Sequence record: NC_021531.1
Direction: 5' to 3' (one strand)
Length of the DNA: 64,000 nt
Shown here: in pieces, positions 3,908 to 62,920 of the stretch
Layout: each line of letters opens with the position of its first letter
How positions within the stretch are numbered: the stretch's first letter is position 1
Made by a program: the position numbers and the translations under genes
Notes under the pieces: generated by a model
The model's database searches: none
What the model was told of the DNA's origin: nothing
What the model saw: only the letters and a program-made list of their open reading frames with translations

Positions 3908-4297
3908 ATGGGTAGAAAGATTAGCCCGGTGGACGTAGTTCGACTCCACCCGGACGACCTTGCCAACATCAAGCCGAAGTCTGAGCTGGATAAGAAATTC
4001 TTAACAGGAATTGAGTGGGGTTTTGCCCTACATCCGGATGAGGTTCGTAATACTGAACAACCCCACCTGAAAGGTCCGGTTGAAATCGACTGGCGTACCG
4101 CAGGGGAAGGTTGCGACGACATCGTGTCAGCGATTAATGCGGTTACTGTCAGCAGTGAGGATTTACCGATTGCCGGCCCTGCCGAGCACCTCATCTCCTT
4201 GCGCCGATTTATCAACGCCCAAGCGGAAACGGTACGTAACGGCGATGCGTGGCAGCTGGGGACTTCATTACATCTGAAGTCTGTATTCGGCGGATGA
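3908..4297 (+). CDS. hypothetical protein
   Basis: ORF; ATG 3908 after GAGGAG SD. Confidence 0.7.
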   Translation: MGRKISPVDVVRLHPDDLANIKPKSELDKKFLTGIEWGFALHPDEVRNTEQPHLKGPVEIDWRTAGEGCDDIVSAINAVTVSSEDLPIAGPAEHLISLRRFINAQAETVRNGDAWQLGTSLHLKSVFGG

Positions 4298-4310
4298 AAA
4301 AAAGAAGAGA

Positions 4311-4350: not shown

Positions 4351-5161
4351 ATACTGCGAAGCGACCACCGCTACGGTAGTTATCACGGTTGCCTTGGTTG
4401 TCGTTGTGGACCAACGCACGCTTAGCAACCAGTAACTGGTCATCGTAGGATTGACCGGCATCGCGATACTCTTCAACGAAGTCTTTGAACTTATCGAACG
4501 ACACACCGTTTTCTAAACGGGCTACGTCCAAGTCCAGTGAGAGTTGGTTGTAGATGTATTGCTTAGTTGCCCACGATGCCAATAATGCAATCGCCGGATA
4601 GAACGGTGGTTTAATCTCGTTCAGTTCCGGGGACAGCTTCGTACGCACCTTCAGTCGGGTTCCGTACTGGAACATACCCGGGTCTTTAACGGACACCGTG
4701 TTCGGACCCAGTACAATCACTTCAGACGACGTCAGGCGAGGCATCGCTGAGTGGGAGTTCACCACTTGCTCAGTGCTGGAAACCACGCCCGATGTTGAAC
4801 CAGTCAGGTACGAACCTGCCGGTGGAAGGGTATACGCTTGTCCCGCAACAGGAGTTCCCACTAAGTGCGCTGCGATGATATCATTACCGCCGGTACGCTC
4901 TTCAGGGATGTAATAAATGCGAGTGAATTGGTCGTGAGGGTCTTGCTCGTAGGATAACGCCGAAAGGTCGATTTCTTTCAACTGGCCGAATTGCGAGAGG
5001 TCGGGGATAACAGTATCCTTTAAGACTTTCTCAACAATCTGGTTCTCAATTGACGCCGGTGCGCCAAACATTCGCATTCCGGGTTCAATGAAAGTAGCAT
5101 CCAGAATCGGTTTCGGGATATTCCGCCGTATCATTCTGAGGCATGCGTCGATGGCACTCAT
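4349..5161 (-). CDS. probable virion structural protein (late gene)
   Basis: 270-aa ORF with GGAG SD; TATG late-type motif upstream on minus strand; product inferred from orientation and context only. Confidence 0.55.
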   Translation of the reverse strand: MSAIDACLRMIRRNIPKPILDATFIEPGMRMFGAPASIENQIVEKVLKDTVIPDLSQFGQLKEIDLSALSYEQDPHDQFTRIYYIPEERTGGNDIIAAHLVGTPVAGQAYTLPPAGSYLTGSTSGVVSSTEQVVNSHSAMPRLTSSEVIVLGPNTVSVKDPGMFQYGTRLKVRTKLSPELNEIKPPFYPAIALLASWATKQYIYNQLSLDLDVARLENGVSFDKFKDFVEEYRDAGQSYDDQLLVAKRALVHNDNQGNRDNYRSGGRFAV

Positions 5162-10516: not shown

Positions 10517-12718
10517 ATGACTATTGAATACGATTCACCTTTCCGTTTGAACAAGGAAGAGTACGAACGCGACATCGACGTTATTGATGCGTACTTCGAG
10601 CAGATTTTCCATTACGTTGATAACCAAACTGGTCATGAGTACGATATCGAAACCATCCGCATGAACATCAAGGAGATGTTTAAAGAGGGTGGCGAGTTGG
10701 AACACACGTTCCCGAAAGTGCGTATGTTTGTGCGTAACCAGAAAACCGGTGACCGTGAAGAGAAGTTCGTTACTATCGATAAACTTTTCCAGAAGGTGAT
10801 TGAGAAGGAACTGATTAGCGCCCCATCACTGACTTTCTATCTGCCAGAAACTGTTAAGCGCTCTAAGCTGTCTGAGTTCATGGAAAAGAACGTGGCTAAG
10901 CGTGCAGTTATCAAAGGCGAAATGTTTGCTGCGAAAGCTGCGGGTAACTCGGTACTGCACATCAACAAAAAGAACGAGCAGAACGCCGTTAAAACTCTGA
11001 ACAACGGTTCGTCTGGTGCATTCAGCTCACCGTACACCATTCTGTACAACCAGTCTTCACACTCGGTACTGACGTCTACCTGCCGTACTGCAACATCGTT
11101 TGCAAACGCAGCCAACGAACGTCTGTTGGGTGGACGTCGTCACTACGACACACCGAACCGAGTTATCGACCACTTCCTGTCTATCGGTACGCTCACTGAC
11201 TTCCGTGAGTTCGGACAGATTGTGGAAGAATTCAATCTGCACATTCCAACCGTTGATGAAACGATGGAAGTTATCCACTACTCGTCCAACGATTACTGGA
11301 TTAACCCGGAAGCAGATAAGAAAATCCGTCAGTACGTTGAGAACACTCCTGGACTCGAACGTGCGGCATTGGTCTACATGGGCGACATGTTCCATCTGGC
11401 CAAATTCAACGACGGCATGATGCGTGATTTCTTCAAAGCACTTATCAGTAAAGAAGTGTTTGATGAAGAAGTGACCGATTGGGATAAGGCGCTGAAAACG
11501 ATTGACGGCGATATGAAAATCGTTATCTCGCAGTTCCGTACCGATATCGTGCCGGTCGGTAAAGCATTTGGTGACGTTCGCAAGAAAGATGAAGAGACCG
11601 ATAAGTGGCTGCCATGGGATCAACAGGACGATTTCAAACAATTGATTCGTACTGGTCTGTTCCTGCAGAAAACTATTGGTCGTTATTCGAAGTTCATCAA
11701 AGTGCTGCTGACCAATAAAAACCTGCCTGTTAACATTGCACGTATGCCGGACGTGGTACGTAAAGTGGGTGTGGTATCTGATACCGACTCCACAATGATG
11801 ACGGCGCAGTGGTGGGCAACGTGGTTTACTGGTTCGTACTTCGGTGAAGAAGCGACCCGTGTTTCGGACATGATTATCTATTTGGCAACGCAGCACATGC
11901 GTCACCTTATGGCGAGTATGTCTAAGAATATGGGGGTACACACCGATCGTATCTTCTTGTATGCGGCAAAGAACGAGTTTAAGTTTGACTCCTTTGCACT
12001 GACCACCAAAGCTAAGCACTACTTCTCACTCATTACTGCACAGGAAGGTCAGCTGTTGACCGACCCAGAGCTGGAAGTGAAGGGCGTATCCTTACGTACC
12101 TCGAACATCCCGCCAATCGTTATGGATGAGTTTAAGAAAACCATCAAAGGTTTCTGTAAGACGGTAGCGGCGGGCGAGCAGATTGAGATTCTGCCTGTAC
12201 TGCGTCGTGTAGCAGAAATTGAACACGAGGTTGCCTCTACCGTACGTAACGGTCGGGCAGATTACCTCAAAACCACCAACATCAAAGACCGCAGTGCATA
12301 TGCGGACGATGATGAAAAGAACTACCACTATCACCGTATGTATAACGCCATCTTCGGGCCGAAGTATGGTTATCTCGATGAACCTCCTTACGAGGCAGTA
12401 CGTCTGCCGGTAAACCTCGAGAACAAAACCCAAATTGCTGACTGGTTAGCTTCGATTGAAGACCCTATCATTAAAGCGGGTGCGGAGAAGTGGTTTGAAG
12501 AGAACCCAAAACGTAAATATACCTCACTGATGCTGCCGGACTATCTGGTGAGCAACCACGGGATACCGCCTGACCTTATCAAGGCAGCGAACTCTCGTCG
12601 TACAGCCTTTGCTACGGTTGAACCGTATTATCATGTGCTGGAGTGTTTAGGTGTGTTTATGATTGACGAAGATCGTACTCGTCTGTTGAGTGACTACTAC
12701 GGGGAGGCGATTGAATAA
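10517..12718 (+). CDS. family B DNA polymerase, catalytic part (phiKZ gp50-like)
   Basis: Motif B-like KTLNNGSSG, motif C-like VSDTDS, KAKHY and EVKGVSL; lacks exonuclease and motif A, which are in 40524-42326. Confidence 0.9.
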   Translation: MTIEYDSPFRLNKEEYERDIDVIDAYFEQIFHYVDNQTGHEYDIETIRMNIKEMFKEGGELEHTFPKVRMFVRNQKTGDREEKFVTIDKLFQKVIEKELISAPSLTFYLPETVKRSKLSEFMEKNVAKRAVIKGEMFAAKAAGNSVLHINKKNEQNAVKTLNNGSSGAFSSPYTILYNQSSHSVLTSTCRTATSFANAANERLLGGRRHYDTPNRVIDHFLSIGTLTDFREFGQIVEEFNLHIPTVDETMEVIHYSSNDYWINPEADKKIRQYVENTPGLERAALVYMGDMFHLAKFNDGMMRDFFKALISKEVFDEEVTDWDKALKTIDGDMKIVISQFRTDIVPVGKAFGDVRKKDEETDKWLPWDQQDDFKQLIRTGLFLQKTIGRYSKFIKVLLTNKNLPVNIARMPDVVRKVGVVSDTDSTMMTAQWWATWFTGSYFGEEATRVSDMIIYLATQHMRHLMASMSKNMGVHTDRIFLYAAKNEFKFDSFALTTKAKHYFSLITAQEGQLLTDPELEVKGVSLRTSNIPPIVMDEFKKTIKGFCKTVAAGEQIEILPVLRRVAEIEHEVASTVRNGRADYLKTTNIKDRSAYADDDEKNYHYHRMYNAIFGPKYGYLDEPPYEAVRLPVNLENKTQIADWLASIEDPIIKAGAEKWFEENPKRKYTSLMLPDYLVSNHGIPPDLIKAANSRRTAFATVEPYYHVLECLGVFMIDEDRTRLLSDYYGEAIE

Positions 12719-12726
12719 GGAACAAT

Positions 12727-13080
12727 ATGGAAAAGTATTTCTTCTGCAAAGATATTGACGCGGCTGCTCCTGAGTTTGCGTCTACCGCGTACCCGACCGC
12801 AGCAGCTGCGGTCTTAAACTATCTGCTCTACTGTCACCCGACGGTTAAGCACATGTGTAAGCTGTCACGTCGGGCTGATGATAAGCCATATCAGTTGACA
12901 ACCTCTCGCCCTAATGAGAAGTTGTCGATGATGGTGTGTGAAACTGATGTCAAGGTAAGCGATGGTCAAGGTCGTGCTATTTACGGCGATGACCAGACGA
13001 TTACCAAGCCGTTAGTTGACCTGACGATTCGTGAAATCGCTGAAGCCTATCGTCTGCCGCTTATCATCGAAAGACACTAA
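12727..13080 (+). CDS. hypothetical protein
   Basis: 117-aa ORF, AAGGA SD. Confidence 0.7.
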   Translation: MEKYFFCKDIDAAAPEFASTAYPTAAAAVLNYLLYCHPTVKHMCKLSRRADDKPYQLTTSRPNEKLSMMVCETDVKVSDGQGRAIYGDDQTITKPLVDLTIREIAEAYRLPLIIERH

Positions 13081-13086
13081 AAGGTG

Positions 13087-13119
13087 CCCTATCTCGGTTT
13101 TCCGGGATAGGGATTTTTT
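13087..13119 (+). terminator. intrinsic terminator
   Basis: CCCTATCTCGG-TTTT-CCGGGATAGGG plus T tract. Confidence 0.8.
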
Positions 13120-13361
13120 GGACGAACCCGCGTCATTCCTAGAAAGTGGTTTTTTGGAGTGTTCATTTTAACTCTTATTATATGCAACTTCCCTTCACGG
13201 GGGAGGGGCCTACGGGGGAGGGGGTAATATGTATATATATGGAGATAATTTAGTAATAGTAAATTGATCTATTAATTTAATAAATAATTAGGTTATTAAC
13301 TTAGTAGATCAGATCCGTAGTAAGTAACTAAGATCGATCTAAACTTAAAAAAGAAAAGTAA
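13120..13361. other. non-coding G-quadruplex plus AT-rich GATC-rich region; candidate replication origin
   Basis: G5-A-G4-CCTAC-G5-A-G5 at 13199-13224, very AT-rich tract, five GATC in 13266-13339. Confidence 0.45.
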
Positions 13362-13389
13362 ACCTACCTACCCTAATGGGTAGGTAGGT
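13362..13389 (-). terminator. intrinsic terminator of minus-strand gene
   Basis: ACCTACCTACCC-TAAT-GGGTAGGTAGGT with A tract on plus side. Confidence 0.85.
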
Positions 13390-13391
13390 AG

Positions 13392-14453
13392 TTATGATCC
13401 GATCACTGCATTCAGCTTACTGAATACGTTCTGATCCAAAGTGAGTTTTACTGAGGAAGGTAAACGTTCAGTGAACCGTAACTGGAAGAAGTTCCTTAAC
13501 TCTCTAACCAGTGTTGGGTAGTAACGGGCCATAGCTGGGTTATCGTAGTTTACCACATACGCCATAAAGTTCAGGTTCACCAGTTGGTAGAACCAGCGCT
13601 GTTGGTTTGTACGGGAATACGATTCATCTGCCAGTAACCCTAACGCACTCGGTTTCCCATTGAAATACATGAGGAGGTGGTTCATTACCACACCGGGGAG
13701 CGGACTACCGGATAACAGTCGCTCACGGATAACCTTTGCATTACGGTCTACGAGTGGTGCGAGCATTGGGATAGGATAGTCTCTGAAGTCATCATCCTTT
13801 TCGATAGCTACACCGTTGGCCAAGAACCGATGACGGTTGAATACCGCTAAGTCCATGTACGTAGGGAGCATACGGTAAACGACATACCGCCAGAGGAAGG
13901 TCTGCAGATTTATCCCACCGTGGTTTTTGTTACGCTGGTAATATTTGTAGGCTTGGAAGTATTGCCAAACCAGAGCAACCAGATTAATTTCAATATAGCT
14001 AATACCGCGTCCACCGTTCTTCGTACCCATCTGCCAGTTCAGATTGGTGTAGTCGTGGAACAGGTAGCGGGCAGGCTGTAGTTCTCGCCACGGGGTATTC
14101 GGGTCGATGTGTTCAATAGAGATAGCGATTAACTCCGCTTGTCCCTGAATGAACTCACCTACATGGATTTCTCCAGGGTGACTGGGAGAGACTAAACGCA
14201 TGGCTGCGCCGATGTTGATGAACTTACGTCGGCACGCCCAGTATATGTCGTCGTACGTGGCGTCGGGTTGAAAGCCGATAGCCGAGAGGATACGCACCAG
14301 TAGGTGTTCGGATTTCACTCGGTTCTGCAGGCCCTCTACACGGTTACGAATACGTCTCTGATTATTTTTTACAACAGATGCAATAGTTATGGACGTAGGG
14401 TCAACGTTATGTGACTTTATGATGCTCTGCTGGATATCCGCGTTACTGAACAT
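13392..14453 (-). CDS. conserved phiKZ-like virion/head protein divergent from chimallin
   Basis: 353-aa ORF, AGGAG SD, AGTATG late-type motif upstream; product from synteny. Confidence 0.6.
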   Translation of the reverse strand: MFSNADIQQSIIKSHNVDPTSITIASVVKNNQRRIRNRVEGLQNRVKSEHLLVRILSAIGFQPDATYDDIYWACRRKFINIGAAMRLVSPSHPGEIHVGEFIQGQAELIAISIEHIDPNTPWRELQPARYLFHDYTNLNWQMGTKNGGRGISYIEINLVALVWQYFQAYKYYQRNKNHGGINLQTFLWRYVVYRMLPTYMDLAVFNRHRFLANGVAIEKDDDFRDYPIPMLAPLVDRNAKVIRERLLSGSPLPGVVMNHLLMYFNGKPSALGLLADESYSRTNQQRWFYQLVNLNFMAYVVNYDNPAMARYYPTLVRELRNFFQLRFTERLPSSVKLTLDQNVFSKLNAVIGS

Positions 14454-14500
14454 GTGGAAGTCTCCTAAGGGTGGTCATACTATCCCACCGCGTTACTCTA

Positions 14501-14529
14501 AAAAATTACAGATAGATTTTATTGTATTG
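14501..14529 (+). promoter_or_regulatory. putative middle-type promoter upstream of chimallin
   Basis: AAAAATTACA-N12-TGTATTG; resembles phiKZ middle motif AAanntTAC. Confidence 0.5.
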
Positions 14530-14656
14530 AACCAGAGCGCTTAAAACCGTTCTACGTGTTTGAGTAATGTTATTGAAAGATTATTCAAACATATTTTATT
14601 CCCGTGAGTTAACTCAAAGTAATCATTTCAATCTCTATAAACAGGAAATAAATACC

Positions 14657-16438
14657 ATGGTAGAATTCTACGACGAAAACAAAAACTCCAACACTTCTAA
14701 AGACTCTAACGCTGCTACTGGCAACGTTCAGGGCTTTTCTGTTGGTACCGCTGCCGAAATGAACATGGCCTTTGAGTGGAGCTCCGTCAACTCTCAGGCT
14801 GGTAAGTTCGTCGAGCTGATTAAAGAAGCGGCGAAAGAGAACAAGTATCTGGCCAACTTCCAGGTCGGTACTGTTGATGCGGTAACCGGTGAATTCGGTT
14901 CTGCGGCTTACGTCGCTGGTGAACTGCGTGGCATCCCGCTGTTCGGTATCGTGTTCTTCGAGAAGGGCCTGTCCCTGCGTCTGGTGGTAAACAACAATCA
15001 GGAAGATTACTACTCTATCGCTTCCCTGATTAACAAAGACGTTATCGCCACTGTTGCGAAAACGCTGAAAACCACCCACAGCCTGTCTCAGGACCCGCGC
15101 TTCATTTCCATCAACACCATCCCGGATCTGGATATCGCCCTGACCCGTGAGCGTGCTCTGTCCATCATGGGCCAGATGATGACCAGCATCTTCGGTCGTG
15201 CTTCTGGCTATCTGGGCAAACTGGTCGTCACCAAAAACGACAAGTTCATCGCACAGGTTGGCAGTATCGGTGAAGGCGCAGTGCTGGACGTAAACGGTCA
15301 CGCACAGCGTGCTGACTTCGGTATCAAACTGTCTCACGTGCCGATGCAGCAGAACACTGCACCGACTCTGATGTCCGGTACCAACGCTCAGCAGTATCCG
15401 AACTGCGCCGCAGCTGGTTACGCTAACCTGCGTTACACCGGTATCGTGAAGAACGCTGACGGTTCCATGAAAGACCGCCGTCAGATTTCTCCTGAGCTGG
15501 TTGTGAGCCTGATGGACTCCTCTACCCTGACTGCGAACGCACCGTTCGAACGTCAGCTTCTGATGCTGGGTGTTGCGGCTAAAACTGCAGCGCTGGGCGG
15601 CTGGATGGAATTCATCAAGAACTCTCTGGACGGTAAGACTCGTAAAATCTCTGCGCTGGCGCAGAACTGCAACTGGGGTGCAGACGTGTCTAACACCGAC
15701 TGGAAAGCGATGGACAAATCTGCAGAAGCGGCTGAACGCTTCCTGCGTGAGTTCTGCTACGAAACCGCTGGTCTGGTAGTTGAGCACCGTGCTGGTAACG
15801 GTATCGGTGGTCTGATTGGTCTGCTGTCCGAAGTGGCACAGAACAAACCTCAGGCGCTGGAAACCCTGCTGGCTCTGCTGGACAACATGTTCCCGGCTGT
15901 AGACAATCTGAAGTTCTCCGATGGTCTGCGTCAGGCATTCGGCGGTAACGTTACACTGAACGCGTCTCACATCGTGTCTGGTGTTGTTCCGACCGTAGCC
16001 GGTGTTTACCGTGGTTCTAACGGCCTGCGTTCATACTCCGATATGGACCTGCTGCGCACCACTACCCACCTGGGTGACGACCGTGCCGAAGTGCTGAAAT
16101 ACTTCCGTGCTCAGTCCTACAAACACCGTAACATGTCTCCGAAACAGCAGCGTATCTATCTGGCGCAGCTGGCTAACAGCATGTTCTCTGGCAACGATCC
16201 GATTCCGACCGGTGAAGCTGTTCAGATTTCCATCAACCCCACTTTCGCTAAGTTCCTGTACGAAGCGATTGATGCACACGGCCTGTTGCAGCTGACTGGC
16301 GTTAACGCTGTGTCTGTTGCGGATTCCGTACCGTTCTACAACAACACTGGCGAACTGTTCGTAATGTCTGGTGTTGGTGGCGTGTCTACCAACAGCGCGT
16401 TCGACTTCGCTCAGCAGTCTGGCTATTTCAGCATGTAA
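14657..16438 (+). CDS. chmA: chimallin, phage nuclear shell protein (phiKZ gp54-like)
   Basis: ~593 aa from ATG 14657 (AGGA SD); lies between DNA polymerase and RNAP beta' gene; motifs DVNGHAQRADF, AAGYANLRY, SDMDLL and TGEAVQISINP resemble known chimallins; strongly biased high-expression codons. Confidence 0.9.
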   Translation: MVEFYDENKNSNTSKDSNAATGNVQGFSVGTAAEMNMAFEWSSVNSQAGKFVELIKEAAKENKYLANFQVGTVDAVTGEFGSAAYVAGELRGIPLFGIVFFEKGLSLRLVVNNNQEDYYSIASLINKDVIATVAKTLKTTHSLSQDPRFISINTIPDLDIALTRERALSIMGQMMTSIFGRASGYLGKLVVTKNDKFIAQVGSIGEGAVLDVNGHAQRADFGIKLSHVPMQQNTAPTLMSGTNAQQYPNCAAAGYANLRYTGIVKNADGSMKDRRQISPELVVSLMDSSTLTANAPFERQLLMLGVAAKTAALGGWMEFIKNSLDGKTRKISALAQNCNWGADVSNTDWKAMDKSAEAAERFLREFCYETAGLVVEHRAGNGIGGLIGLLSEVAQNKPQALETLLALLDNMFPAVDNLKFSDGLRQAFGGNVTLNASHIVSGVVPTVAGVYRGSNGLRSYSDMDLLRTTTHLGDDRAEVLKYFRAQSYKHRNMSPKQQRIYLAQLANSMFSGNDPIPTGEAVQISINPTFAKFLYEAIDAHGLLQLTGVNAVSVADSVPFYNNTGELFVMSGVGGVSTNSAFDFAQQSGYFSM

Positions 16439-22533: not shown

Positions 22534-22559
22534 AATATATGTTATCGTCGTGAATAACC
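22534..22559 (+). promoter_or_regulatory. putative early promoter
   Basis: AATATATGTTATC-GTC-GTGAATAAC. Confidence 0.55.
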
Positions 22560-61852: not shown

Positions 61853-61880
61853 TTTTTTACAACTGAAAGATTAGATATAG
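61853..61880 (+). promoter_or_regulatory. putative middle-type promoter with no ORF before the next terminator
   Basis: TTTTTTACA-N12-GATATAG. Confidence 0.6.
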
Positions 61881-62030
61881 GCAGCCAGGGGATACCTGAG
61901 TTGGGGAGGGGGTTTTTTAACGAGTGATGAGCGTAGCGAATCACGACTTCCTTATTCCTAAGTAATCCTCTCTAAGGATTACGCTCAGTAAGTGTGCTCT
62001 CCCTTCGGGGAGAGTCCTTATTTTTCTTTT
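61881..62030 (+). ncRNA. candidate small structured non-coding RNA / primer RNA
   Basis: Bounded by promoter motif and terminator; internal hairpins; no SD-led ORF. Confidence 0.4.
61997..62030 (+). terminator. intrinsic terminator
   Basis: CTCTCCC-TTCG-GGGAGAG plus T-rich tract. Confidence 0.8.
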
Positions 62031-62084
62031 ACGTCATTTTCTAATCCTATGCTAACAAACACCTCTTTAACAAGGAATTATTCG

Positions 62085-62880: not shown

Positions 62881-62899
62881 CCTAACGAAAAATATTTCA

Positions 62900-62920
62900 G
62901 ATATATATTACTTTTGTGAA
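62900..62920 (+). promoter_or_regulatory. putative early promoter
   Basis: GATATATATTAC contains the phiKZ early motif TATATTAC. Confidence 0.65.

Follow-up and report, generated by a model that had tools for sequence, protein, structure and literature searches.

The segment between positions 13176 and 13349 of the Cronobacter phage CR5 genome appears to be a composite cis-acting element, possibly a transcription-activated replication origin of the Derbicusvirus clade that resembles T4 oriF and mitochondrial CSB II in type. Judged from its sequence, we regard this assignment as tentative and somewhat short of an even chance. The window that was analysed comprises bases 1-64000 (64,000 nucleotides) of the CR5 record (NC_021531.1, 223,989 bp, genus Derbicusvirus), and genome-wide counts were made on the whole genome assembled from this record. 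Three independent genome-wide extremes and a conserved promoter lie within 230 bp at this site.

By the proteins it encodes, CR5 is a phiKZ-like jumbo phage of the nucleus-forming, chimallin-encoding kind. The gp023 product (14657-16438) matches the nuclear-shell (chimallin) PHROG, its homologues in the relatives carry the Pfam chimallin family, and gp024 codes for an RNA polymerase beta-like subunit. The element lies in a 311-bp intergenic gap (13081-13391) between the convergent, terminator-capped genes gp021 (12727-13080, plus strand) and gp022 (13392-14453, minus strand). A DNA polymerase gene is close by, since gp020, located upstream of gp021, encodes a divergent family-B enzyme. An intrinsic terminator on the plus strand (13087-13119), composed of an 11-bp stem and a T-run and kept in relatives, closes the DNA polymerase-gp021 operon and forms the left boundary of the element. 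The right boundary is given by the conserved intrinsic terminator of gp022 on the minus strand (13350-13389), in which a 12-bp stem formed by ACCTACCTACCC and GGGTAGGTAGGT is followed by a T-run.

The original prediction had placed a G-quadruplex (G4) motif in a non-coding gap beside the polymerase operon, and this location held, the gap downstream of gp020 and gp021 containing no conserved open reading frame. A hidden small gene was considered and rejected, as the reading frames of 22-46 amino acids are not conserved and insertions or deletions of 1-2 nucleotides in the G4 loop break any frame, which rules out coding. A mini-ORF behind the SD-like GGAGG (ATG at 13229) was likewise discarded; it spans 12, 7 or 3 codons depending on the phage. 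Little could be learned from the flanking proteins. The predicted structure of gp022 (pLDDT 84.7) had no match in the PDB and only one unnamed cluster in AFDB, suggesting a new fold without a named match, and atlas leads for gp021 and gp022 stayed below the reliability bar. Moreover, gp021 is not co-conserved with the element, its place being taken by unrelated small proteins in the related contigs L139 and L140.

The G4 motif G5-A-G4-CCTAC-G5-A-G5 was found exactly where it had been predicted, at 13199-13224 on the plus strand. With tracts of 5, 4, 5 and 5 guanines and loops of 1, 5 and 1 nucleotides it conforms to the canonical intramolecular quadruplex (four tracts of at least 3 G, loops of 1-7 nt). 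On both strands of the 224-kb genome no other G4 motif has 4 G or more in each of four tracts, and its G4Hunter score of 2.68 is the genome-wide maximum. None of 200 simulated genomes (order-1 and order-3 Markov models) contained such a motif, which is thus far from chance. The motif can also be read as two tandem ACGGGGGAGGGG units, a perfect 12-nt direct repeat with a period of 15. Since a single duplication could have produced it, conservation weighs more than the simulation count. G4-aware folding of the RNA gave -33 to -37 kcal/mol compared with -17 kcal/mol for the best hairpin, and the RNA quadruplex is predicted to be very stable.

The G-tracts are preceded by the leader CAACTTCCCTTCAC (13185-13198, plus strand), of which CAACTTCC is invariant. 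Its pyrimidine tract is predicted to pair with either G-repeat, forming a hairpin that would rival the quadruplex. This candidate was dropped because the hairpin was not better than those of shuffled sequences (z = -0.73) and the leader is altered in L139 and L140. The element is present in one copy per genome. Recurrence of the G-run GGGGAGGGGG at 61903-61912, which had been noted before, was found as described; the run belongs to a different intergenic unit and is not a copy of the element. It is one of two other non-hairpin G-runs, at 61903 and 154590, both of which are followed by T-runs. A second, two-tract look-alike of the element was observed at 223.7 kb.

Upstream of the quadruplex, TATTATATG at 13176-13184 on the plus strand corresponds by motif and conservation to a phiKZ-type late promoter of the TATG class, as recognized by the non-virion RNA polymerase (nvRNAP). 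The TATATG at 13179-13184 that had been noted before is present and forms part of it. The almost invariant core TATTATATGCAAC lies 15 nt upstream of the G4 and is directed into the motif. A TATG whose G is +1 defines the late promoters of phiKZ, and in vitro none of its positions is dispensable (PMC4666361). In CR5, TATG precedes the start codons of many late genes (head, tail and baseplate) by 30-45 nt, and the extended version TATTATATG(CAAC) also occurs at the intergenic sites 153570 and 40510, both on the minus strand. Plus-strand transcription by nvRNAP would thus probably start at G13184 and proceed rightwards. With this start, the G-rich strand is the non-template strand and the G4 occupies positions +16 to +41 of the RNA.

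Other promoter classes were sought in the same region. A weight matrix built from CR5's own early sites gave no score above 2 for the early (virion RNAP) promoter TTTTCAGATATATATTACTTTAGTGA on either strand of 13100-13420, compared with 19-38 for true sites. The minus-strand sequence TATACATATTAC, a partial look-alike of an early promoter, was rejected by this matrix. Scanning the gap for sigma-70 promoters yielded none; the host RNA polymerase is not expected to act in such phages.

The conservation that the original prediction had proposed to check was found across the clade, with a central loop that varies. The 26 nucleotides of the motif are identical in Derbicus, EarlPhillipIV, pEa_SNUABM_38 and Phobos, which makes five Derbicusvirus genomes including CR5. 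Derbicus, EarlPhillipIV and pEa_SNUABM_38 agree with CR5 at every position of a 65-nt block that extends from TATTATATG across the G-tracts to TATATATA, and Phobos differs by two transitions. Deeper relatives were obtained by a search for gp022 homologues, after which their contigs were fetched. In L138, L139 and L140, whose gp022 proteins are 72%, 54% and 53% identical to that of CR5, all four G-tracts and both single-A loops are kept. Their common layout consists of TATT(A/G)TATGCAACTTCC, 6-9 nt, GGGGAGGGG, a loop, G4-6-A-G5 and pure A/T. Across 7 lineages the central loop reads CCTAC, CTTC, CTT or CTTA, the tracts comprise 4-6 G and the units are spaced by 13-15 nt, while the single-A loops are invariant in all relatives examined. 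Conserved G-tracts around a free loop are the pattern predicted by selection on a quadruplex and would fit a phased protein dimer poorly. TATG (13181-13184) is invariant in all 7 relatives, in which its distance to the G4 is fixed at 15-16 nt.

The same TATG is invariant in genera with a short gap. In Asesino, SPN3US, Caitlin and L144 (gp022 about 41-43% identical) the gap measures only about 80-100 bp and lacks the G4, the AT tract and the GATC cluster. It contains a bidirectional terminator, TATTATATG or TATAGTATG, a covarying GNRA hairpin and a purine-rich GGGAGAGGG-like box. This distribution indicates that the promoter is ancestral at this spot and that the G4 and the AT tract are an innovation of the Derbicus clade. 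The retention of the promoter in genera without the G4 furthermore implies that it has some other, ancestral job. Scans based on gp022 recovered only known genomes from IMG/VR and nothing from JGI metagenomes, and a loose G-repeat pattern run against IMG/VR produced more than 100 unrelated, uninformative matches.

Directly behind the last G-tract lies the 16-nt, A/T-only tract TAATATGTATATATAT (13225-13240, plus strand), which would form a weak RNA-DNA hybrid and is proposed as a zone of pausing, 3'-end formation or priming. In every relative the G4 is followed by 7-10 nt of pure A/T. The adjoining region (13241-13349) is a candidate DNA unwinding element. That an AT-rich tract immediately follows the motif had been stated before and proved correct, positions 13243-13362 (79% A+T) being the AT-richest 120-bp window of the 223,989-bp genome. 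Sequence conservation of this region is low. In Phobos 51 of 114 aligned columns of the AT-rich tract downstream of the G4 are kept, and in distant relatives 41-51 identities were counted in more than 110 columns, the composition being retained. Such a combination would fit an unwinding element better than the body of a functional RNA. The region also contains an AT-rich palindrome (13265-13311) with 19-nt arms that are 89% complementary, a 9-nt spacer and GATC at both ends. Palindromes rich in A and T occur at the same place in every relative with sequences that differ by lineage, and a comparison of the L139 and L140 palindromes revealed a compensatory change from CCG/CGG to CTG/CAG. To judge from this pattern, the AT palindromes are under selection.

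The GATC sites form a cluster at 13266-13433, which accounts for 8 of the 160 sites of the genome; the last three lie within the 3' end of gp022. Genome-wide, GATC is depleted 5.5-fold in CR5 (160 observed, 875 expected). One 150-bp window at this locus holds 7 sites compared with 3 in the next best, corresponding to a genome-wide Poisson probability of about 1e-7. Within the cluster, AGATC pentamers are arranged as inverted pairs and AGATCGATCT (13331-13340) is a perfect palindrome. The cluster is kept in relatives, with 3-8 sites between +60 and +232 of the G4. Phobos has lost most of the intergenic sites and has kept the G4 perfectly. In genera without the G4, GATC is much less depleted (2.5-3.2 per kb).

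In the gap of L139, L140 and L141 the G-rich strand can be folded into a covarying structured RNA of about 170 nt. Fourteen pairs are changed on both sides, as against 7.0 +/- 1.7 in shuffled sequences (none of 500 reached 14) and 0-5 in slid controls, and folding of the opposite strand is poorer. Coming from three sequences, this is only suggestive of a structured RNA made from the plus strand of the gap in these phages. Such an RNA would fit a primer, for which ColE1 RNA II is a structured precedent, and equally a stand-alone non-coding or antisense RNA. A scan of the gap against Rfam 15 gave best scores of 12-18 bits compared with gathering scores of 39-112, and the relatives yielded no match.

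These features can be joined into the following mechanism. The phage nvRNAP would start at G13184 of the TATG promoter and read into the motif, with the G-rich strand as non-template. At about 15-40 nt of the transcript, a four-tetrad G4 could form, made up of RNA only or of RNA together with the displaced DNA strand. The polymerase would then enter the pure A/T tract, where the weak hybrid may cause pausing or termination, and the RNA would remain anchored as an R-loop. Once trimmed, perhaps by the RNase H domain protein gp186, the RNA would prime the leading strand rightwards from its 3' end. The neighbouring very AT-rich, palindrome-bearing DNA would melt, and the DnaB-like helicase gp069 could be loaded there, the GATC cluster possibly marking the site for additional control at the DNA level. 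CR5 encodes both proteins (gp186, PF00075, E = 3.6e-24; gp069, a match to the divergent DnaB family PF20307), and their presence is permissive for an R-loop origin of the T4 type and not specific to it.

The original prediction of an R-loop- or primer-forming origin is partly supported by these data. The promoter, the G-tracts, the A/T tract, the AT-richest stretch, the palindromes and the GATC cluster are all in place; the recurrence at 61903 is not a copy of the element. We infer that an origin with an R-loop is the best single explanation, now better founded, and that the locus is a candidate for this function. A bolder version of this proposal is possible, and we rate it as clearly below even. 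The locus would be the first identifiable origin of a nucleus-forming (chimallin) jumbo phage, at which the phage's own multisubunit RNA polymerase makes a short, G4-anchored R-loop primer at TATG, beside an unwinding element that is AT-rich and palindromic and has a GATC cluster as its mark. Such a mechanism is not known from phages, and the look-alike at 223.7 kb might be another such site.

Several further analyses bear on an origin function. Cumulative, raw and codon-position GC skew as well as AT skew (third positions split by gene strand) followed gene orientation and carried no replication signal. DnaA boxes (TTWTNCACA with at most one mismatch) did not occur in 12943-13549. In place of the at least three phased direct repeats of about 17-22 bp that make up an iteron-type origin, the locus has only two 12-nt units with a spacing of 13-15 nt. 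Many public sequencing runs contain CR5-like DNA of about 97-98% identity. The four RNA-labelled runs that were examined gave low-depth contigs only; depth did not peak at the element and was zero at this position in two of them. One of the four includes the whole 224-kb contig and thus contains DNA. Speaking against an origin, TATG is a late-class signal in phiKZ, and earlier firing would be expected of an origin. Inside the phage nucleus the DNA may be out of reach of host Dam and SeqA, and what GATC does at oriC may then have no bearing here.

The strongest rival to an origin is a non-coding or antisense RNA that is driven by the late promoter and carries the G4 at its 5' end, an interpretation which we find somewhat unlikely. 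The element would then be an RNA gene or a promoter-proximal element, and the G4 of the plus-strand transcript would act at the RNA level, for example through stability, protein binding or sponging, the RNA either being short (about 45-60 nt) with its end behind the G4 or running on as an antisense RNA to gp022. Such a role would agree with the TATG that is kept at the 3' end of the gp022 homologue even in the absence of the G4 and is followed there by the covarying GNRA hairpin and the GGGAGAGGG-like box, with the structured RNA of about 170 nt on the same strand in L139, L140 and L141, and with the predicted stability of the RNA G4. Small and antisense RNAs are moreover known in phiKZ-like phages (PMC11512511; PMC10914365). 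However, it leaves unexplained why a GATC cluster survives in a GATC-purged genome and why the AT-rich body keeps its composition and palindromes and not its sequence. The structured segment is absent from CR5 itself, no canonical plus-strand terminator follows the AT tract, Rfam offered no match, and the low-depth contigs of the RNA-labelled runs were without a depth peak. Halting of transcription is a quite improbable function of the locus. In that case, the G4 and the A/T tract would act as a stop or insulator, keeping the late transcript or polymerase-operon read-through from running into the convergent gp022 transcription, and the pyrimidine leader would serve as an anti-G4 switch. A structure followed by an A/U-only tract has the geometry of an intrinsic terminator, in which a G4 can replace the hairpin (PMC3488243). 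The position between convergent units, the alternative hairpin of CUUCCCUU with a G-repeat and the T-runs behind the G-runs at 61903 and 154590 are compatible with this function. Nevertheless, the gap is already bordered by a good hairpin terminator on either strand, a terminator 15 nt past its own promoter requires another purpose, and the 110 bp of AT-rich palindromic DNA with the GATC cluster would be left without explanation.

Two further explanations invoke proteins that bind the DNA. A phage protein might read the GATC palindromes at a recognition or cleavage site (pac or recombination-initiating), with the G-repeats and the AT tract as structural flags; this we consider improbable. The single copy per genome is as expected for such a site. 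The same is true of the clustering of GATC in a genome purged of it, with AGATC inverted pairs and the perfect palindrome AGATCGATCT, and the P1 pac site is made of Dam-methylatable TGATCA/G hexamers. The terminase gene, however, is far off at 216.5 kb, and Phobos combines a perfect G4 with the loss of most intergenic GATC sites. Neither does a cleavage site account for the fixed distance between promoter and G4. Furthermore, headful packaging with circular permutation is assumed for phiKZ-like genomes, and the 224-kb contig of the public run is permuted relative to the record. Finally, the tandem ACGGGGGAGGGG units could be iteron-like sites for a sequence-specific phage DNA-binding protein, with no quadruplex involved. 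The perfect 12-nt direct repeat and the single-A loops that are invariant in all relatives would suit this idea, which is nonetheless very improbable: a spacing that drifts between 13 and 15 bp and tracts that vary from 4 to 6 G are awkward for a phased dimer, the copies number only two, and no candidate binding protein is co-conserved.

For phiKZ-like, nucleus-forming phages, literature searches recovered neither a mapped replication origin nor a description of a functional G-quadruplex. The locus, set apart by three independent genome-wide extremes and by its conservation across the clade, provides a precise, mutable target of 170 bp for asking how replication in the phage nucleus starts and if its primer comes from the phage RNA polymerase. 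Should it serve as an origin, it would be a novel form of a known type, a promoter with an unwinding element, here with a built-in four-tract G4 and in a nucleus-forming jumbo phage. If it instead gives rise to a functional RNA, it would represent a phage RNA with a conserved G4, likewise a rarity among bacteria and their viruses. Under either reading, G4 function in prokaryotes could be tested here in a clean natural setting.

Comparison with known systems revealed partial likeness to several classes of origin. The GATC sites of CR5, which is a phage of Dam-positive Enterobacterales, are densely clustered here in AT-rich DNA, and this recalls enterobacterial oriC, P1 oriR and P1 pac. The 13-mer GATCTATTAATTT fits the oriC 13-mer consensus with one mismatch, a frequency not above chance (2 found, 1.28 expected). 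Unlike the CR5 gap, oriC contains DnaA boxes. Lytic origins of herpesviruses (KSHV and EBV oriLyt, PRV OriL) have G4 motifs or G-rich transcripts beside AT-rich palindromes, as far as the cited accounts go (PMC10714766, PMC12203722, PMC8623188). According to the same partial accounts, they differ from CR5 in belonging to eukaryotic viruses, in being much larger and in having many protein-binding sites.

The minimal T4 origins oriF (uvsY) and oriG (34) consist of a promoter and a downstream AT-rich unwinding element, and a persistent R-loop, processed by RNase H, primes the leading strand (PMC3016281). Composition and not sequence is needed in the T4 unwinding element, whose sequence can be replaced (PMC3016281); similarly, the AT tract of CR5 is poorly conserved in sequence and keeps its AT-richness. 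A phage promoter, assigned by motif and conservation, likewise leads into an AT-rich element within about 100 bp in CR5, where the AT-richest window begins about 60 nt downstream. In contrast, the T4 origins have no G4 or G-cluster between the promoter and the unwinding element and use the host RNA polymerase with MotA, whereas the candidate CR5 element has a TATG for the phage multisubunit RNA polymerase, would operate inside the phage nucleus and has an added GATC cluster. In mitochondrial CSB II, the RNA of a GnAGn tract folds into a G4 that, together with a weak hybrid downstream, ends transcription prematurely, and the R-loop is anchored by a mixed RNA-DNA G4 in which the non-template strand takes part (PMC3488243; PMC4176368). 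CR5 appears to share this arrangement, with GnAGn on the presumed non-template strand downstream of the promoter and a weak A/U hybrid behind it. However, CSB II (between LSP and OriH) has a single GnAGn unit, which supplies two tracts and is about 100 nt away from the promoter, whereas the two units of CR5, at 15 nt from the probable start, supply four tracts and thereby suffice for a G4 made entirely of RNA or entirely of DNA. The polymerases are unrelated, and the likeness to CSB II is best regarded as analogy, not homology. Overall, the CR5 element seems to combine the layout of the T4 origins with that of CSB II.

Outside the window, the CR5 record contains a second element at 223705-223880 (L130:12705-12880 in the piece covering this end of the record), whose layout is that of the G-quadruplex element at 13199-13224. 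It consists of TTTTTTACAAC, a tract of pyrimidines, AAGGGGGGAT repeated in tandem, an AT-rich window and a terminator, in this order. The tandem repeat (GGAAGGGGGGATCAAGGGGGGATGG) has the second-highest G4Hunter score in the CR5 genome, and conservation of the G-part is 100% in the related Derbicusvirus genomes Derbicus, SNUABM38 and Phobos. Direct and inverted repeats as well as several AUGGAU/AGGAA motifs are found in the AT-rich part, which is the third AT-richest window of the genome. The whole element may represent either another site resembling an origin or the gene of a small RNA. Beside it, a nearly invariant stretch of ~175 nt on the - strand (record 223480-223655; L130:12480-12655) is bounded by an inverted TTTTTTACAAC copy and a - strand terminator. 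Small CDSs annotated at its counterpart in Phobos and SNUABM38 are mutually inconsistent, and the stretch looks like a conserved non-coding RNA.

The motif TTTTTTACAAC is present in nine copies, most of them intergenic, and may be a promoter motif. One copy marks the start of an intergenic unit at window 61855-62035, which ends with a terminator (62000-62035) and includes the other GGGGAGGGGG copy, at 61903. This unit has a box, GGGGAG(A)GGGGG-T-run...GAGCGTAGCGA...TCCTTATTC, in common with record positions 154590-154640 (L128:41590-41640, in a further piece outside the window), where it is located 96 nt upstream of an early promoter at 154697. The consensus of the early (virion RNAP) promoters of CR5 is TTTTCAGATATATATTACTTTAGTGA, with approx. 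seven strong sites genome-wide. A site in the window lies at 62894-62919, and weaker ones upstream of the chimallin gene occupy 14505-14530 and 14582-14607. The window also has a second class, ATATATGTTATCnnnGTGA, with occurrences at 22535, 27787 and 55511.

GATC is 5.5-fold under-represented in the whole CR5 genome including the window (160 sites, 0.71 per kb), whereas homologous 8-10 kb of the related genera Asesino, SPN3US and Caitlin, which lack the G-quadruplex, contain 2.5-3.2 sites per kb. Judged from these densities, the GATC purge seems to be specific to the clade with the G-quadruplex/GATC element.

CR5-like sequence with ~97-98% identity to window 11800-15200 was found in public runs labeled as food, bee, manure, plant, marine, wastewater and liver metagenomes or metatranscriptomes. 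One RNA-labeled run contains a contig of 224,364 nt. The gap at 13060-13408 differs from CR5 by one substitution and one indel in this strain, compared with ~3% divergence in the flanking genes. The public assembly contig L141 of a relative ends at position 4369, exactly at the AT tract beside the expected place of the G-quadruplex, an indication that short-read assemblies break at the G4/AT junction.

The annotation of two genes in the record can be made more precise. The hypothetical protein gp023 (window 14657-16438) is a homologue of chimallin, the nuclear shell protein, and gp186 (record 170585-172126; L129:8585-10126), labeled as ribonuclease, contains an RNase H domain.

In three contigs of relatives carrying a gp022 homologue (L139, L140 and L141, each at 4068-4300), the interval from the GATCGATCG box to the gp022 terminator contains ~170 nt of additional sequence, on the counterpart of the CR5 + strand. 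This segment displays good covariation for a multi-helix RNA, with 14 compensatory pairs, a number reached by none of 500 shuffles; a match in Rfam was not obtained. In other genera of chimallin phages, the gp022 homologue is always followed 3′ by TATTATATG or TATAGTATG together with a covarying hairpin that has a GNRA loop and a box rich in purines (L124:3650-3725, L125:4576-4640, L126:4566-4625 and L144:4060-4125). This combination appears to be a conserved unit with a late antisense promoter. At the counterpart position in phiKZ, TTTATG directly follows a terminator containing GGAGGGGG.
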